From: Epithemia pelagica
Lineage: Eukaryota; Protista; Bacillariophyta
NCBI GenBank assembly: GCA_946965045.2
Contig: OX337229.1
Span: 4,278,001-4,342,000, forward strand
Length of the DNA: 64,000 bases
Reading direction: 5' to 3'
Below, piece after piece: positions 3,507-9,943 of the stretch. The notes beneath the pieces were generated by a model. The model saw nothing but the letters and a program-made list of their open reading frames with translations. It did no database searches and was not told the DNA's origin. Numbering within the stretch: position 1 is the stretch's first letter; the number at the start of each line of letters is the position of its first letter. Position numbers and translations under genes: made by a program.

Positions 3507-4180
3507 CAAAGGCTCCCCTCTTAGACATGGATCGCGACAATTGAAGACTCTCGAACTCTGACGCAAAACTCTATCTGTCACTGGCGTTGGCTTAAGAAGT
3601 ATGATAACACCCAACGCGTGTAACAGAAGGTTGTACAATATCTCACTCCTCTCGTAGATGGAATACAATATGGAATGCCGATTGGGGGGGACAGACCAAA
3701 AGTGCGGGCACGTGCTTAGCATGGCGGGGCTCAATTCGGAAGCAGAATATAAACATCGCCTTGTTGATCGTTATCACGCCCCACTAATGTAAATGCGACT
3801 GCAAAATTCTTTCAGAAGCAAAGAGCAATGACAATGGGTCCATTCCATTCGAGACATACGGCGGGTCCAACAAAGTCCTCATGTCCGTCGCATATCTCAT
3901 TTTACACCCATGGATTCCAACACTTGAAAAGAACTTCTTCCTTTCTAAGGCTATGGTGCACGCCAGAGGGCCTGGTTTCGTGAAGCATGGTTCTACATTT
4001 AGAGTCACAACAAGGTGGACCTTCAATTCATTCAAGTTACATAGTTGGATCTTTGGCCATTAACATGTGGATCATTATCGATTATCTATGCAAGAAGGAA
4101 ATACGAATACTCCATCGCTAGTTTCGTGGAGGACCAGTTGATGTCTCGAAGACCAGAGGTCTTTGTTGGTGAACTCTGTT

Positions 4181-5554
4181 TTAATTTCCTGTCCAAATGG
4201 ACTGCAATCGGTGGGTACGAACCATGCGACGCCATTTTTTGGGTGACACAATGGAGCTGCGTCGACGACGAACAAGGTGACGGGAATTCTTTTTATGAAC
4301 CTCACGGGGTGTGGTGGAAGACAAATGATGGTCAAGAGACGGGGCAGGGCAAGACTGAACGGACAAGACTGACGGTGCTCGTGTGGTGTGAACCTCCTTC
4401 TCCGCTGAATGCTCTGTAAATGCTGCGACATCCTCTTTTCCGCCCTGTTCCTGTGTGTCATTGTTGTCCAAAAGTGGCATGGAAGCGATACTGTGTTGCG
4501 TGGAGGCGACGCTGACATCGTCGGAAACAAAAGGATCGGCAGCTTTCTTGCAGTCATTATTGGGAGGGACATTCGCAGCCATGTAGGTTGCGCTGTTGCC
4601 GTCATGGTTGTCATTCTCGTTGGTCTCAGGAATTGCTTCTACATCCATGGGAGTCTCCTGCACCTGTTCAATGTCGGTGTCGTCGTTCAAGACAGTGCTC
4701 TCTACTGGATTTTTGTCCAGTTGTGGAGGTGATTCCTTGTTGTTGGTCTCCGAAAAATTATTCTTTTCATCGCAGCCGGTGGAATCTTGACTGTCACTGC
4801 CAAGAGGGACATCCACGCCTGATTCTGTCTGGTTGCGGTTTTCATTTACATCATCGTCGTCATCGGTTTGGAAAGCTTCTTCCACATCCATGTTGGTCTC
4901 ATCCTGCTTCTCAACTTTGGAACCCGCCACCATGAGAGGATTCGACTGCTTGAAGTCCTCCTGGGATGGATTGTCTTGAGGCAGTTCTTCTTTGCTAGTC
5001 TCAACAACGCTCTTATTATCGTCTGTTGTGGTGACAAGCGTGGTCTTGGTCTCTACCATCATGGGAGTCAGTGTCTCATTACCCTCCTCCTCGGCAAACT
5101 TCCCCTCTGTTTCTGTTGGCATTGCTTTATTGCCATTCTCCGAGTCGTCGTCGTCGCCGCTGTTGCAGAGTTCAACGAATGATGTCGGCATGGTCTCAGT
5201 CGTCTTCTCATGGTCAGGCGAAGTGTCGAAGACAGCGGTAGATTCTTGAGCTTCTACCTGCTCTGTGGTATCCGGCTTTGCCGCAGACTTCGCTGTCCAG
5301 TCGCGCCATTCTTGTTTGGCCAATGTCACTTGACGTTCAATTTCTCCAAGTTCCTCTTTGGCGTTGGCAATGTCGTCTTGGTACTGAGCTTGTTCTTGCT
5401 TGATACGATGTAGGATTTGCGTGGTTTCGACATCCACCTGTTGAATCACTTGTTGGACATGCTCCAATTGATCTACCAAATGGTGAATCTGTGTGCTTGT
5501 TGTTGTTCGTAAGGAGGCCTGGTCGGTCGGGTTGCTTTCGTGAATTCGGTTCAT
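4181..5554 (-). CDS. Acidic low-complexity protein with N-terminal coiled coil
   Basis: Long ORF. First plausible ATG is MNRIHES. Heptad-like Q/E/L-rich region followed by a D/E/T-rich disordered tail. No family recognised. Confidence 0.6.
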   Translation of the reverse strand: MNRIHESNPTDQASLRTTTSTQIHHLVDQLEHVQQVIQQVDVETTQILHRIKQEQAQYQDDIANAKEELGEIERQVTLAKQEWRDWTAKSAAKPDTTEQVEAQESTAVFDTSPDHEKTTETMPTSFVELCNSGDDDDSENGNKAMPTETEGKFAEEEGNETLTPMMVETKTTLVTTTDDNKSVVETSKEELPQDNPSQEDFKQSNPLMVAGSKVEKQDETNMDVEEAFQTDDDDDVNENRNQTESGVDVPLGSDSQDSTGCDEKNNFSETNNKESPPQLDKNPVESTVLNDDTDIEQVQETPMDVEAIPETNENDNHDGNSATYMAANVPPNNDCKKAADPFVSDDVSVASTQHSIASMPLLDNNDTQEQGGKEDVAAFTEHSAEKEVHTTRAPSVLSVQSCPAPSLDHHLSSTTPREVHKKNSRHLVRRRRSSIVSPKKWRRMVRTHRLQSIWTGN

Positions 5555-5783
5555 GATGAATATGGACTTGCTCTCTTGATATCTTGGATTTTGATTTTGT
5601 GAGCATTCCGATTTGAGTCCGACGAAGAGAACACTTTGCATGAAAACTTCATACCACAACAAAAGCGGTCATCATCGCACATCATCGCACACAACGAGAT
5701 TTGATGCCGACCGGGACCGTCTGGACGTCCGCAGGAAAGGAGGGTTTCAAAAGCTAATGCGATTCGGAACTCGGAACCCGGAG

Positions 5784-6134
5784 ATGCCAAAAATGCGAGT
5801 AAACTCGTGTGCAGTACGGCAAATCATTTGGCGCGCAAACATTCAGGGACCATGGCGACATCCCAACTACGTCCTCCAATACGACCTCGACTGCGTTTAC
5901 ATGCGCAACAACAACCATGCCTCTAGCACAGTCTATGATAACATCATCCGCCTCCTCACAAACCGCGGATTTGAATGGCACCAATACTCCTGCTGGAGAG
6001 TCGACAACAAAACAGCCTTCGGTGCAAACTACGACGCGAACTTCGTCGCCACCCAAATGGAACTACGCTTCGGGGTCGGTATCATTCCACGCCTCCATTA
6101 CGAGCGTCGAACGAATTTCTTCGTCGTTCGCTGA
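5784..6134 (+). CDS. vapD: VapD/Cas2-like ferredoxin-fold nuclease
   Basis: YVLQYDL...TVYDNIIRLLTNRGFEWHQYSCW matches the VapD/Cas2 pattern (hydrophobic strand ending in D-L, helix, GF-x-x-x-Q-x-S-x-aromatic). Start ATG is uncertain (5757, 5784 or 5793). Confidence 0.72.
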   Translation: MPKMRVNSCAVRQIIWRANIQGPWRHPNYVLQYDLDCVYMRNNNHASSTVYDNIIRLLTNRGFEWHQYSCWRVDNKTAFGANYDANFVATQMELRFGVGIIPRLHYERRTNFFVVR

Positions 6135-6162
6135 AGACGAAATCTCGAAGCAACAAGCCGAG

Positions 6163-6666
6163 ATGGAAGCACTGCTGTCTGCTCAGAAAGGCCAAGGAGA
6201 CGGCCCTGCCAAGAAAAAGCGCCGGAAGACGGTAAGGGTACCGACGCTGACAGAAACGCATCTGAAAATCCGAGCGGTTGTCGACGCGGGAGAAACTTGG
6301 GAGCTGGAGTTGGAGAGTAAGCACGGCCTTTCAGATCTCGAAGCTTGTGTTTGTGTTGGTCTAGTTGCCAAGTACCAACATCAAGACTCTTTCCCTGCTT
6401 CTGAGCCTGGAGCCAATCAAGGGTTAGTCGACCACGCCAGAATCGGGTGGCGCCTCATGAAGGAAAGCATGGTAATGATGAACAAGTACCCCCAAGAATC
6501 TTGCGAGCAGACGAAAATCAACTACGAATGGAAAATGATCACAGGAGAACCAACACTGAAGGAATTGAAAGAAGAACGCGAGCGCAAGATCGCAGCACGA
6601 AAGCGCAAGACCTCCCTGCGTCATCCAAAAGTAGATGAAAACGAAGTGTTGGGGAAAAATAAATAA
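6163..6666 (+). CDS. Uncharacterised basic protein with NLS-like motifs
   Basis: ATG lies 28 nt after the vapD-like stop. Contains PAKKKRRK and RKRK. The frame is open back to 5809, but that S/T-rich part looks like a shadow of the vapD-like codons. Confidence 0.55.
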   Translation: MEALLSAQKGQGDGPAKKKRRKTVRVPTLTETHLKIRAVVDAGETWELELESKHGLSDLEACVCVGLVAKYQHQDSFPASEPGANQGLVDHARIGWRLMKESMVMMNKYPQESCEQTKINYEWKMITGEPTLKELKEERERKIAARKRKTSLRHPKVDENEVLGKNK

Positions 6667-6838
6667 ATATTGTCAATGATCAATTCAGCAGCATCTTTGC
6701 TTCTCAAGCACGGACTCTGCTTCGTCCAACGACAATGACGGAGGTGACACCAGCAGTAAGCGAAAGGCGGCTAATCATTCCCCAGACTTGTTCGGGACGT
6801 TCACAATCCGCTGTGTGCTACAAATCGATCTCCAAACT

Positions 6839-7623
6839 ATGCCGATCTTTGTGAGAGGAGAATTGTTGCAAAGGTCGCTTGCCAACTCAACCGAGGGCGA
6901 AGATGAGGAGGAATCACGAACAACAAAGTTGATGGCAGAAGACAACCAGTCAGCCCTGATGCGAACTGTTCTGCCCTCTTACGATGAAGAAAGTCAAATT
7001 GTCGCCTCAGATCCAAAGAATGCTTTGGATGTGATTCAGAGAACCATGAGTGCCACAACCAAAACGATTTCCTTACCGAATGATTTGACTTCGCTTTATC
7101 ATCAATGTCCTATCATTCCTTTGTGCGACACCCTGTGTGGGCAGTGCCTCCAATGTCTGTAGTCGAACCCATTGCGGAATATGATACCCGCCAAGATATC
7201 AAGGAAGATTTCGTCCATACATCTCCGAGAAAACTCGCTGTTGATACCAACTTTGCGGGTGGTGTTACCACTAGTCAAATGGGGTATTCATACGGATCAA
7301 CTGGTTCGGCTGACTTGAGCACCTACGACGTTAACCCGATTCAAAGCTGGGAAAAGACAAGGAGACGCAACGCCAATGTACCAACTCGCCCAAATCTAAG
7401 CGTACTGACTGATGCAGAGGACGAATCAAGGCAAGATCAAACCATGCGTTACAACTTCAGAGAACCACATCAACCTTCAGCAAGAGATTCTTCTCTAGCG
7501 ATGCTTGGAGAGGATGACGCCGACGCTGGAGAAGATGAACCCTCCCGAACTCGTATTCTATGGCATGATGAATCGAATGGGAATGGCGAAAAAGTGGCAA
7601 AATCAAGTCTAATTCAGTGTTGA
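6839..7623 (+). pseudogene. Possible degraded or intron-containing gene (two overlapping ORFs in different frames)
   Basis: ORFs 6839-7162 and 7105-7623 have protein-like composition and need a frameshift or intron to join. No family recognised. Confidence 0.3.
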
Positions 7624-7807
7624 CTTTGGAATTAGTGACTTATGACTTCACAACCCTGATTCGAAAGCTTGGAATTCTATTGTAATCGAAGCTACCAGCC
7701 AGCCGACCTTCACCATTGCAAGTTTGTTCTCACCCATTGCTTTGTCTGGTTGATTCCCTTGGCTACCGTTGTAGACTATCTTGAGAATATTATGAGCTGA
7801 ATTGGCT

Positions 7808-9943
7808 TTACGTCTTTTTGAGACTCTTGCTTTCTTCTCTGCTAGTCGTGGTAGACGACACATCCTTCGGAAGTTTCAAAATTCCGGCAAATACATCGGT
7901 TGACGAAAACAGTCCTTCATTGGGAGGAGTAAAGGCCAATGGAGTTGTACTCGATCGTTTTCGTTTGTTGGAATTTGGTTGTTGCTTGCGTTTTTGTTTT
8001 CGTTCTTGTTCAATCAGTGACTTGTACGACAAATCCAAAAAATCGTCTACATTGTGCAAGGGCAAGGCTAATTCTTCTGCCGTCCCCAACGAGGCGGCCA
8101 TAGTCGCCACGGCAGGATAATAATGCGTGCTCAAGGCGGACAATTCCCACAAACTACTCTGCAAAGCATTGGCCTTGGCGGGATCGTCAGTCGTGGCATT
8201 GTACGCATCGTCCAAAGATGAATCAGTACGATGCAAGAGGCATTGTGTTTCGGGATGCTTGCGAAACCAATTCGACACCATGGCGAGTGCTACCAAAATG
8301 CCCGCCGGCGGGGCCGAGGAAAGGGCACTGCGTAACAATCGCTTGCCCATTGCGGCCACCACATAGGCAGGTAGCAAGTCATTGCGCGAGATGGACTTGT
8401 CCAACAATTGAAAGAACCGATTCCGATACTTGACGGTGAACAAGGTGGGACGAATCAGTTGGTATAATTGCGAATAGTAACTCGGATACTCCAATCCATG
8501 TTGCGTCATGAGGTAAAACAAACCATCCAAGGCCAATATCGGGATCATTGAATTCGTTGTAATGGTTTGTGAATCGTCATCATCAACTTCTTTGTCTTGG
8601 GTGGTAGTTGTTGTTGTTGTCGCGTTGGTGGAATAGGCTTGCATGAAAAAGTCAGTAAAGACGAGTGGTTGGTGTACAACGGGTAGCACATGTTGGGGTA
8701 AAAACAATAGGGCTTGTTTCAAACATGAAACGGGTAACCATGGCAATCTCAAAACGGCCAACCACGCCTTGCACCATTGTCGACGATGGTACTGCAGCGA
8801 TTGCATGGGCCATCGTTTGGGTGTTGATTTCGTTACCTTGGAAGGTGGCTCTTGTTCCTCGTCCTCTTCATCATTCTCAACTTGCGATGGAGTGTCATCT
8901 TCATCGTCCGAAGAAGAATCGTCGTCATTGTCGGAACTACTATCAGAATCTTCATCCTCGTTGGAAAGTGTTGCATCAGTCAGTGGGGCAAACAAAAAGG
9001 AAGACTTAGTACTGCTGTTGTTGCCGTTGCTTTGAGGATTGTCCAAGTCGTCTTGTGAGGCAACCAGAGGAATGAGAGTCAACAATTGAAACAGTCGTTC
9101 CGAGGCGAGTGCCAAAGCAGACGAGGACATGGGTGCTTTGGTGGTGGTCATACCGCCTTTGGAACGTTTCTGGTCATCTCCGGGTTCTTGATTATGATGA
9201 CTGTTATAAAGTTGATGTGCCACAGTTCGAACATGGACCATCGTGTAGTATTGAACGTCATAAAAGGGTTGAATGAATTCGTATTGGACCATGTGTTGTA
9301 TAGACTGATCCCACAAGGGCAAGTGCGTCATGGCCTCAATCCATTCTTGCAACAGATTGTCATCCAATCGCTTTACTCTTGCAGTACTGGTGGTGGTGCT
9401 GGTTGGACGGACGGCTATCGGAGAGGAGGCCACGACACCCCAAAAGGTTCGTACAGCCGTTCGTTTGCCTTGTTGAATGCGATGTTGCAATTGTCGTCGA
9501 AATTGTACATGACGTGCTTGCAAATACTGTTTCCACTTGGCTTGAGCTGTGGTGGACGACCCGTCGTCGTCCTCCACGAAATATTTCTCGTGTACTTGTG
9601 GATGCAATTGGACAAAGAGGCGTCGCAATTCGTCCAATCGAGCCGCATCGGTGCGATCGTCCAACACGGATGGACGGTCTCCTTGTTGCAACAACCGTTC
9701 CATCTGTTGAGCCATGTTTTGTTCTTTTGTCATTGTGGATGTTGACATGGTAGTGGCGCCACTGGTCTTTCCGCCAGCGGACGACGACGCAATGGTCTTC
9801 TTGTGAGTGCTCATCGTCATGGTCAGAAGACGACGAGAGAGAAAAAATATTTCGTGGTCCTTCCACATCAAGTCTGACCTCCATCCGTCTGTCGGTCGCA
9901 TTTTTAACGGGGTCGCTCTTACAGTCGCTTTGGGTCGCGGCAT
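7808..9943 (-). CDS. NOC4: Nucleolar complex protein 4 (CBF/Mak21 family)
   Basis: ILALDGLFYLMTQHGLEYPSYYSQLYQL, KYRNRFFQLLD, LPAYVVAAMGKRL and ANALQSSLWEL...HYYPAV are NOC4 signatures. The true start may be an internal ATG. Confidence 0.9.
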   Translation of the reverse strand: MPRPKATVRATPLKMRPTDGWRSDLMWKDHEIFFLSRRLLTMTMSTHKKTIASSSAGGKTSGATTMSTSTMTKEQNMAQQMERLLQQGDRPSVLDDRTDAARLDELRRLFVQLHPQVHEKYFVEDDDGSSTTAQAKWKQYLQARHVQFRRQLQHRIQQGKRTAVRTFWGVVASSPIAVRPTSTTTSTARVKRLDDNLLQEWIEAMTHLPLWDQSIQHMVQYEFIQPFYDVQYYTMVHVRTVAHQLYNSHHNQEPGDDQKRSKGGMTTTKAPMSSSALALASERLFQLLTLIPLVASQDDLDNPQSNGNNSSTKSSFLFAPLTDATLSNEDEDSDSSSDNDDDSSSDDEDDTPSQVENDEEDEEQEPPSKVTKSTPKRWPMQSLQYHRRQWCKAWLAVLRLPWLPVSCLKQALLFLPQHVLPVVHQPLVFTDFFMQAYSTNATTTTTTTQDKEVDDDDSQTITTNSMIPILALDGLFYLMTQHGLEYPSYYSQLYQLIRPTLFTVKYRNRFFQLLDKSISRNDLLPAYVVAAMGKRLLRSALSSAPPAGILVALAMVSNWFRKHPETQCLLHRTDSSLDDAYNATTDDPAKANALQSSLWELSALSTHYYPAVATMAASLGTAEELALPLHNVDDFLDLSYKSLIEQERKQKRKQQPNSNKRKRSSTTPLAFTPPNEGLFSSTDVFAGILKLPKDVSSTTTSREESKSLKKT

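Follow-up and report, generated by a model that had tools for sequence, protein, structure and literature searches.

A divergent VapD-like open reading frame with a linked, overlapping-frame partner in the genome of the diatom Epithemia pelagica

The locus and its conserved core

The window considered here is a stretch of 64,000 nucleotides (nt) from the diatom Epithemia pelagica (assembly GCA_946965045.2, contig OX337229.1), corresponding to C2:4278001-4342000 of a genome of 60.5 Mb in 23 contigs. A first-pass annotation had marked the forward-strand open reading frame (ORF) at 5784-6134 as a lone intronless gene for a nuclease resembling VapD and Cas2; the ORF of 116 amino acids (aa) is borne out and contains the motifs quoted from it, YVLQYDLDC and VYDNIIRLLTNRGFEWHQYSCW, however it does not stand alone, being one half of a conserved two-ORF cassette (Table 1). 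Judged by sequence comparison it is more than a chance ORF, since its last 91 residues have clear relatives on other eukaryote-type contigs; three relatives of 91-155 aa are 53-61% identical over these residues (E 1e-17 to 1e-25 against 5.8e9 proteins), and one relative carries the JGI name 'VapD'. The relatives begin exactly at M-P-N-Y, so that the conserved unit in the window is the core at 5859-6131; this corrects the extent originally given to the ORF, as the 25 residues encoded by 5784-5858 are an extension peculiar to the window copy. The extension is basic with zero acidic residues and resembles an organelle-targeting presequence, possibly by chance.

Table 1. Coordinates of the VapD-like ORF, the partner and associated features, counted from the first nucleotide of the window.
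Feature	Position	Strand	Remarks
VapD-like ORF as first annotated	5784-6134	+	ATG-to-TGA, 116 codons plus TGA
Out-of-frame ATG in strong context (ACCATGG), 24-codon ORF	5852-5854	+	7 nt 5' of the core, where relatives start
Conserved 91-residue VapD-like core, ferredoxin-like beta1-alpha1'-alpha1-beta2-beta3-alpha2-beta4	5859-6131	+	Family alignments, AF2, Foldseek, hhalign
Asp ending strand 1, GAC codon; core residue 9, ORF residue 34	5883-5885	+	Aligns with D7/D11 of bacterial VapD
Long +1-frame ORF from its first ATG, running into the partner domain; one candidate form of the partner	5917-6666	+	
Ser of the Q-Y-S motif, TCC codon; core residue 44, ORF residue 69	5988-5990	+	Aligns with S46 of C. 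jejuni VapD
Partner ORF from the first ATG past the VapD stop, 167 codons	6163-6666	+	28 nt behind the stop
Basic patch KKKRRK, partner frame	6211-6228	+	K/R-rich patch at the equivalent place in most copies
Conserved partner domain, consensus PTExHxKLR..DAG..WE.DLE..HGL...E.C....FP....AK.GW.LLK...YPEC	6238-6540	+	

At the point where the family reads ATG CCC AAC TAC the window copy reads CAT CCC AAC TAC, and the canonical start is lost; 7 extra bases separate the ATG at 5852 from CCC AAC TAC (window 5852-5861), and an identical out-of-frame ATG at -7 is present in the C18 paralogue (L008). A second allele (run X4; partly X3) differs by 13 substitutions over 3.6 kb and by deletions of 3 nt at 5680, 7 nt at 5764 and 11 nt at 6736, the deletions falling in non-conserved stretches; divergent haplotypes or strains are thus present within this one study. 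The deletions at 5680 and 5764 rule out a 164-aa gene model starting at 5640 and leave 5784 and 5793 as possible starts; these are the only in-frame ATGs 5' of the core, and a start at 5784 gives the longest ATG-initiated reading compatible with the 7-nt deletion. The window copy may make an N-terminally extended protein or none, and it is possibly impaired owing to the absence of the canonical start.

The VapD-like half of the window could accordingly be an inactivated or decaying copy of a real family, in which case only the partner, or neither half, would be made; this reading is considered unlikely. It agrees with the missing start and an out-of-frame nearest ATG, as well as with three other loci (L010, L009 and L015) in which the VapD half is broken and the partner still scores well; this would be in keeping with a nuclease half that tends to decay first. 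The coding differences between the alleles, at 5811, 5821, 6036, 6195 and 6412, are likewise all non-synonymous and lie at variable positions, which fits weak constraint on the window copy. The 91-codon core is, however, uninterrupted and keeps all invariant residues including the Asp and the Ser; in-frame ATGs are available, and the frame survives in the allele with the 7-nt deletion. Moreover, the relative P0004 also lacks the canonical Met with its core intact.

Relationship to VapD

Profile comparison and structure modeling indicate that the window protein is very probably a VapD homologue, and the family to which it belongs is supported as a divergent eukaryotic branch of VapD, about 91 residues long, within the Cas2/VapD superfamily. 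The NCBIfam VapD model (NF041506) is the top match for the window protein and for three relatives, in the same register in each case (E 0.002-0.008), and some relatives match Cas2 models weakly (TIGR01573, E 7e-4 to 0.035; PF09827, E 1.4e-3). Searches of the PDB with a single sequence or with four sequences returned nothing or noise only (MINDY-2, enterotoxin). A family profile built from 18 sequences collects 72 proteins at E<=1e-3 from 1.84e9 representatives searched, and among these 1.84e9 proteins it reaches the bona fide VapD P0084 at E 8.7e-4; P0084 scores 120.7 bits against NF041506, for which the cut-off is 100, and 144 plasmids carry annotated vapD genes that match its domain. P0084 is a bacterial-type protein of 337 aa from a Logan contig of 1804 nt, with tandem VapD domains at about 1-100 and 118-204, and it was the sole bridge from the eukaryotic profile to canonical VapD.

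A profile match to VapD or Cas2 had been set as a test in the first-pass annotation, and the outcome is positive: with the profile built from 48 sequences the best matches in the PDB are the VapD entries 3ui3 (E 8.6e-4) and 9kan (9.5e-4), with three further VapD entries below them. Using hhalign, the 48-sequence family alignment matches P0084 with a probability of 89.7% and annotated Campylobacter/plasmid VapD with 94.5% (E 8e-8, 58 columns); identity to bacterial VapD is 12-19%. The Helicobacter pylori VapD sequence quoted in the first-pass annotation agrees with PDB 3ui3 in the alignment. Weak, repeated matches of the PDB profile search to the first helix of Bcl-xL (E 0.035-0.7) are rejected, as the fold search gives VapD and Cas2; they stem from the common pattern V-x-x-F-L-x-x-K-L-x-Q-x-G-[YW]-x-W-x-Q-[FY]-S.

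Predicted fold and catalytic residues

The AlphaFold (AF2) model computed from 48 sequences has a predicted local distance difference test (pLDDT) score of 89.8 and a predicted template modeling (pTM) score of 0.77; an earlier model from four sequences, with a pLDDT of 57, was excluded from structure searching. The order of secondary structure elements in the model is b1-a1'-a1-b2-b3-a2-b4 (E3-9, H12-17, H22-35, E39-42, E45-48, H53-71 and E78-84 of the core), which is the modified ferredoxin-like fold of VapD, and the C-terminal 7 residues have low pLDDT (63). The combination of AlphaFold and Foldseek had been proposed as a check, and it places VapD on top: against the PDB, ranks 1-6 are all VapD from H. 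pylori, Haemophilus influenzae and Campylobacter jejuni (TMq 0.71-0.83, root-mean-square deviation (rmsd) 2.0-3.0 Å), with Cas2 ranking next at a template modeling (TM) score of about 0.5 and an rmsd of 4-5 Å.

The Asp and Ser that had been pointed out as retained key residues are both conserved; in C. jejuni VapD their counterparts are D11 and S46, and in H. pylori and H. influenzae VapD the Asp is D7. The Asp at core residue 9 is invariant in the 18-sequence alignment and aligns to the Asp of the F-D-L motif in 3ui3, 9kan, P0084 and Campylobacter VapD; the Ser at core residue 44 is kept in at least 90% of the same alignment and aligns to S46, which is invariant in the bacterial VapD alignment. 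D11 and S46 are the two catalytic residues of C. jejuni VapD and belong to its catalytic cleft, and a D7N change abolishes VapD toxicity (PMC11980593). By analogy with these proteins, the product is most likely an Asp/Ser-dependent VapD-type nuclease that works as a dimer.

Alternatively, the VapD fold may have been domesticated and be neither toxic nor nucleolytic, serving for instance as a nucleic-acid-binding or scaffold subunit with its partner, in the manner of Cas2 in the Cas1-Cas2 integrase. The nuclease activity of Cas2 is dispensable for its function (PMC11980593), and old, conserved, paralogous clades in diatoms are typical of host genes; on the other hand, no positions of the family are better conserved than the residues on which VapD toxicity depends, and the frequent decay and turnover of copy number would be unusual for a housekeeping complex. 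A domesticated role of this type is considered quite unlikely.

Partner gene and cassette layout

A second gene follows the VapD-like ORF on the same strand in every locus examined, namely 8/8 loci of the E. pelagica genome, decayed copies included, and 7 loci from other sources; the metagenome scan contributed only two loci, both with the partner. From this distribution the two ORFs appear, with little doubt, to form an obligatory cassette of about 0.6-0.9 kb. The partner domain is about 85-100 residues long and its family has 48 database members; the domain gives no Pfam, PDB-sequence or Atlas match, and when its profile is compared with the VapD-like profile by hhalign the probability is 0.1%, so it is not a VapD homologue. 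Prediction of a complex between two VapD-like cores and one partner gave a score of 0.01 and no interface; the alignments were unused and the partner fold was uncertain, and this outcome is counted neither way.

The partner lies in the +1 frame relative to the VapD-like ORF in 13/13 comparable loci, with a distance from the VapD stop to the partner domain of 28 to 109 nt. In the window this frame is open from a GTG at 5809, through its first ATG at 5917, to the stop at 6666, and overlaps the VapD-like ORF. In five loci (L001, L003, L005, L010 and L022) the stretch from the VapD stop to the partner domain lacks an ATG, and translation of the partner must there enter from upstream. Most copies have a +1-frame ATG within the VapD ORF, either at +52 (AAC AAT GGN) or at +58 (CAT GCC or TAT GCC), both with an A at -3; the ATG at +52 is formed with AAT, the minor Asn codon (10/56 Asn codons). 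A peptide from an Amphiprora transcriptome (MMETSP0724; P0129), the counterpart of locus L011 of the E. pelagica genome, reads in the +1 frame across the VapD-like region into the partner, which places both ORFs on one mRNA in a related diatom.

Genome-wide codon usage would predict 1.6-2.7 stops in the +1 frame, against the 0-1 observed (P about 0.1-0.37 per locus); the open frame was rejected as independent evidence of a second coding frame, as it is explained by codon composition. The same frame bears on the very improbable case that the long +1 ORF (5809/5917-6666) is the true gene and the VapD-like frame arises only incidentally. In favor of this, the +1 ORF has the greater length and runs open through the region, and gene callers and the transcriptome ORF caller choose it in P0086, P0099, P0114 and P0129. 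The VapD frame, however, shows protein-level conservation down to about 20-30% identity; its catalytic positions are invariant, its stop directly follows the conserved C-terminus, and its fold is predicted with confidence. The +1 reading over this part is low-complexity and S/T-rich, with an openness that codon composition explains.

Two ways of joining the ORFs into a single product were considered and rejected. Database 'fusion' proteins (P0039, P0021/22, P0055, P0065 and P0083) are not splice products, as their contigs show deletions or frameshifts that identify them as decayed copies; an intron joining the two ORFs is contradicted by a VapD frame that is kept to its stop after a conserved C-terminal Arg, and by a spacer that is kept as K/R-rich coding sequence.

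Genomic context and alleles

The cassette lies beside a eukaryotic gene, and GC content is even across the window. The gene at 7811-9943 (-) encodes a CBF/Mak21 nucleolar protein (E 2.5e-41), and the neighbors of relatives on other contigs include HSF, SBDS, calpain and DEAD-helicase genes. On the other side, the divergent ORF at 4181-5662 (-) encodes 493 aa of acidic, low-complexity sequence with no Pfam match and lies about 220 nt from the cassette, with which it may share a promoter region.

The stretch is covered by four DNA runs (three samples, one study), in which single contigs cover 4057-7593 and 4057-7646 at flank-level depth with no joints. Coverage across the flanks had been called for as a check on the assembly, and these contigs bridge the locus at even depth; the locus is neither contamination nor an assembly chimera. 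Bacterial contamination, an assembly chimera or the Cas2 of a CRISPR adaptation module would account for the otherwise prokaryotic occurrence of VapD and Cas2 and for the JGI pipeline having named one relative 'VapD'; the probability of any of these is nevertheless practically negligible. Contigs of all four runs cross both junctions at uniform depth and a eukaryotic gene adjoins, while no close relative turned up in pattern scans covering 185,579 prokaryotic species genomes and IMG/VR. The absence of cas1 that had been noted for the window extends to the whole 60.5-Mb genome, where a search for Cas1 (PF01867) found none (the control matched in 7/14 genomes), and the eukaryote-type sequences are well separated from bacterial VapD in the tree described below.

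The contigs of all four DNA runs end at 4057 and at 7629-7658 with differing loose ends, and the depth rises 3-5 fold at 7618-7751; a short repeat or structural variant lies at the edge of the 3.6-kb block around the cassette.

Copies, phylogeny and a viral member

The family profile finds 11 places in the E. pelagica genome, on at least 8 contigs, of which 4/11 are full-length without stops (on C11, C2, C8 and C18, that on C2 being the window copy) and 7/11 are partial or stop-bearing; the paralogues at C11:516181 and C8:3447706 have the canonical start. Beyond this genome the cassette is present on many further contigs of diatom type. In a maximum-likelihood tree all 43 eukaryote-type sequences fall on one side of a 100/100 branch, apart from three bacterial VapD; the four intact copies of the genome are spread over at least three well supported subclades, each of which also holds sequences from other sources. 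The placement of these copies in old subfamilies speaks against recent transfer, and on sequence evidence the family is regarded as old and paralogous, such that no donor or recent transfer can be named. The nuclease had been described at first as horizontally acquired or lineage-specific; given one deep, well separated eukaryotic clade with old paralogues, horizontal acquisition holds only if it was ancient.

The divergent wing of the family includes AYV86567.1, a protein of Sylvanvirus, which is a giant-virus metagenome-assembled genome (MAG); this protein is the only significant match to the window model in BFVD (TMq 0.91). On the Sylvanvirus contig (L016:4001-4730) the stop of AYV86567.1 overlaps a downstream ORF of 142 aa by 23 nt, and a protein kinase gene lies nearby. 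The downstream ORFs of the distant members L016 (Sylvanvirus) and L018 have no detectable kinship to the diatom partner.

The viral member bears on the proposal that the cassette belongs to a mobile or viral element as its cargo, or is what is left of one, either related to giant viruses or a small selfish insertion, which is compatible with a VapD-derived cassette and is itself rather improbable. It would agree with the overlapping downstream ORF and the structural match of the Sylvanvirus protein, with the dispersal of copies over at least 8 contigs, and with direct repeats that bracket two copies of the genome: the C18 cassette has perfect 31-nt direct repeats on either side (L008:1445-1475 and 2137-2167), and the C8 cassette has direct repeats of about 160 nt that are 86-94% identical (L007:37-198 and 1887-2034). 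These repeats may be a trace of insertion or duplication. A repeat search around the window copy, however, found none, and comparison of the flanks of paralogues found no similarity outside the two ORFs, by which a transposon context was rejected; the scan of IMG/VR gave no close relative, and copies in deep subfamilies common to other species speak against a recent burst.

Proposed mechanism

It is proposed that one mRNA carries both ORFs, as for the Amphiprora relative, and that ribosomes would make the VapD-like protein from the first AUG. The partner would be made from the +1-frame AUG about 52-58 nt further on, most likely through leaky scanning; alternatively, ribosomes would shift by +1 at the CGN-UGA stop or reinitiate. 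Co-translation of both ORFs from one mRNA is modestly favored. The VapD-like protein is expected by homology to cleave RNA or DNA as a dimer, using the Asp and the Ser. The partner would bind this protein and restrain or direct it, a part played in bacteria by VapX, VapY and VapW. The cassette would then behave as a toxin-antidote, defence or selfish module, a reading suggested by the obligatory, co-duplicated partner together with frequent decay, often of the nuclease half (L009, L010, L015). That the pair consists of a toxin and a neutralizing partner is a tentative and somewhat doubtful proposal drawn from analogy with the bacterial systems.

As a whole, the explanation that combines a eukaryotic VapD branch, a two-ORF cassette and this mechanism is considered fairly probable, with several observations weighing against it. 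The window protein and its relatives score 17.3-18.7 bits against NF041506, far under the equivalog cut-off of 100, which marks a divergent branch rather than an equivalog of bacterial VapD; a Pfam scan of the window protein gave no Cas2 or VapD match, and the sequence alignment to VapD is restricted to the N-terminal ~60 residues. The partner is unlike VapX, VapW and VapY. It is placed downstream of the VapD-like ORF; in the bacterial vapD genes examined the small ORF is found upstream. When synonymous codons are shuffled with each gene's own codons kept, the probability of 0 stops in the +1 frame is 0.3-0.9 (Fisher p 1). The run search found the locus in DNA runs only; the start lost from the window copy and the uniformly non-synonymous allele differences belong here as well, and the frequent decay of copies suggests that the family is possibly dispensable.

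Comparison with known systems

Bacterial VapD (H. pylori HP0315, 3ui3; H. influenzae VapXD, 6zn8/6zi0; C. jejuni VapWD, 9kan) and the diatom family belong to one length class (about 91 aa) and have the modified ferredoxin fold in common (TM 0.71-0.83, about 2 Å). Both begin with Y-x-x-x-[FY]-D-L and have the motif G-[FW]-x-x-x-Q-x-S, with the Asp and the Ser in place, and in both a small partner gene is tightly linked (PMC11980593, PMC3351183). Bacterial VapD is an endonuclease toxin, with RNase activity in vitro and SOS induction in vivo. It forms a homodimer via its C-terminal segment, which creates the catalytic cleft, and a hexamer in H. influenzae; in the diatom family identity to these proteins is low and similarity ends after about residue 60. 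Unlike bacterial VapD, the diatom family is nuclear, eukaryotic and multi-copy, and has its own deep clade. The VapX and VapY antitoxins have an SH3-like barrel and VapW is an inactive VapD homologue; the diatom partner is unrelated to all three, and instead of preceding the nuclease ORF it comes after it, overlapping in the +1 frame. Tight linkage with a small second gene is thus found in the diatom cassette, while an antitoxin of the VapX, VapY or VapW type is not.

Cas2 has its superfamily fold in common with the diatom family, and Cas2 structures rank just below VapD in the structure search; the diatom family differs from Cas2 modules in its poorer structural match, in having no Cas1 in the genome and no array, and in its different partner. 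Type II toxin-antitoxin systems and eukaryotic toxin-antidote (killer-rescue) elements resemble the diatom cassette, whose two small ORFs sit close together, are inherited and copied jointly, include a nuclease-type first component and have left many decayed copies; instead of an operon, however, a eukaryotic dual-coding mRNA would be needed, and any toxicity, binding or drive is putative in the diatom cassette. Eukaryotic and viral dual-coding mRNAs that are read by leaky scanning or +1 frameshifting exist; the diatom cassette likewise has a second AUG some 50-60 nt on, in the +1 frame with an A at -3, and its overlapping frames are kept through indels of multiples of three. In contrast to such mRNAs, translation of the overlap is putative in the diatom cassette, and the open-frame signal vanishes under its own codon use.

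Significance

VapD and Cas2 are regarded as prokaryotic proteins, and recent surveys treat VapD systems as prokaryotic (PMC11980593); a literature search found no paper with both 'VapD' and 'diatom', and none tying VapD to giant viruses. What appears to be new is that VapD has a eukaryotic branch, with a novel partner encoded in an overlapping frame. The cassette would supply a completely uncharacterized partner domain, and for the study of a eukaryotic mRNA that encodes two proteins in overlapping frames it is a tractable example. A cut-off of 100 aa is common in ORF calling on transcriptomes; the nuclease, at about 91 aa, falls under it, which may explain the lack of annotation of the family.

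In its most far-reaching form, the proposal is that an old toxin-antidote cassette, complete in itself and descended from the prokaryotic VapD/Cas2 nuclease, is present in the nuclear genomes of diatoms and in at least one giant virus. Overlapping frames of one capped mRNA would encode the nuclease and a novel antidote with the basic patch, leaky scanning or +1 frameshifting would fix the ratio of the two products, and the cassette would serve antiviral defence or be selfish; this is speculative and considered rather unlikely. The idea of a cassette can be tested in transformable diatoms or by toxicity assays in E. coli or yeast. If true, it would place a further nuclease toxin family among the few prokaryotic defence or toxin-antitoxin modules that persist in eukaryotes, and the toxin-antidote cassette would be a eukaryotic answer to the operon-style coupling of toxin and antitoxin.

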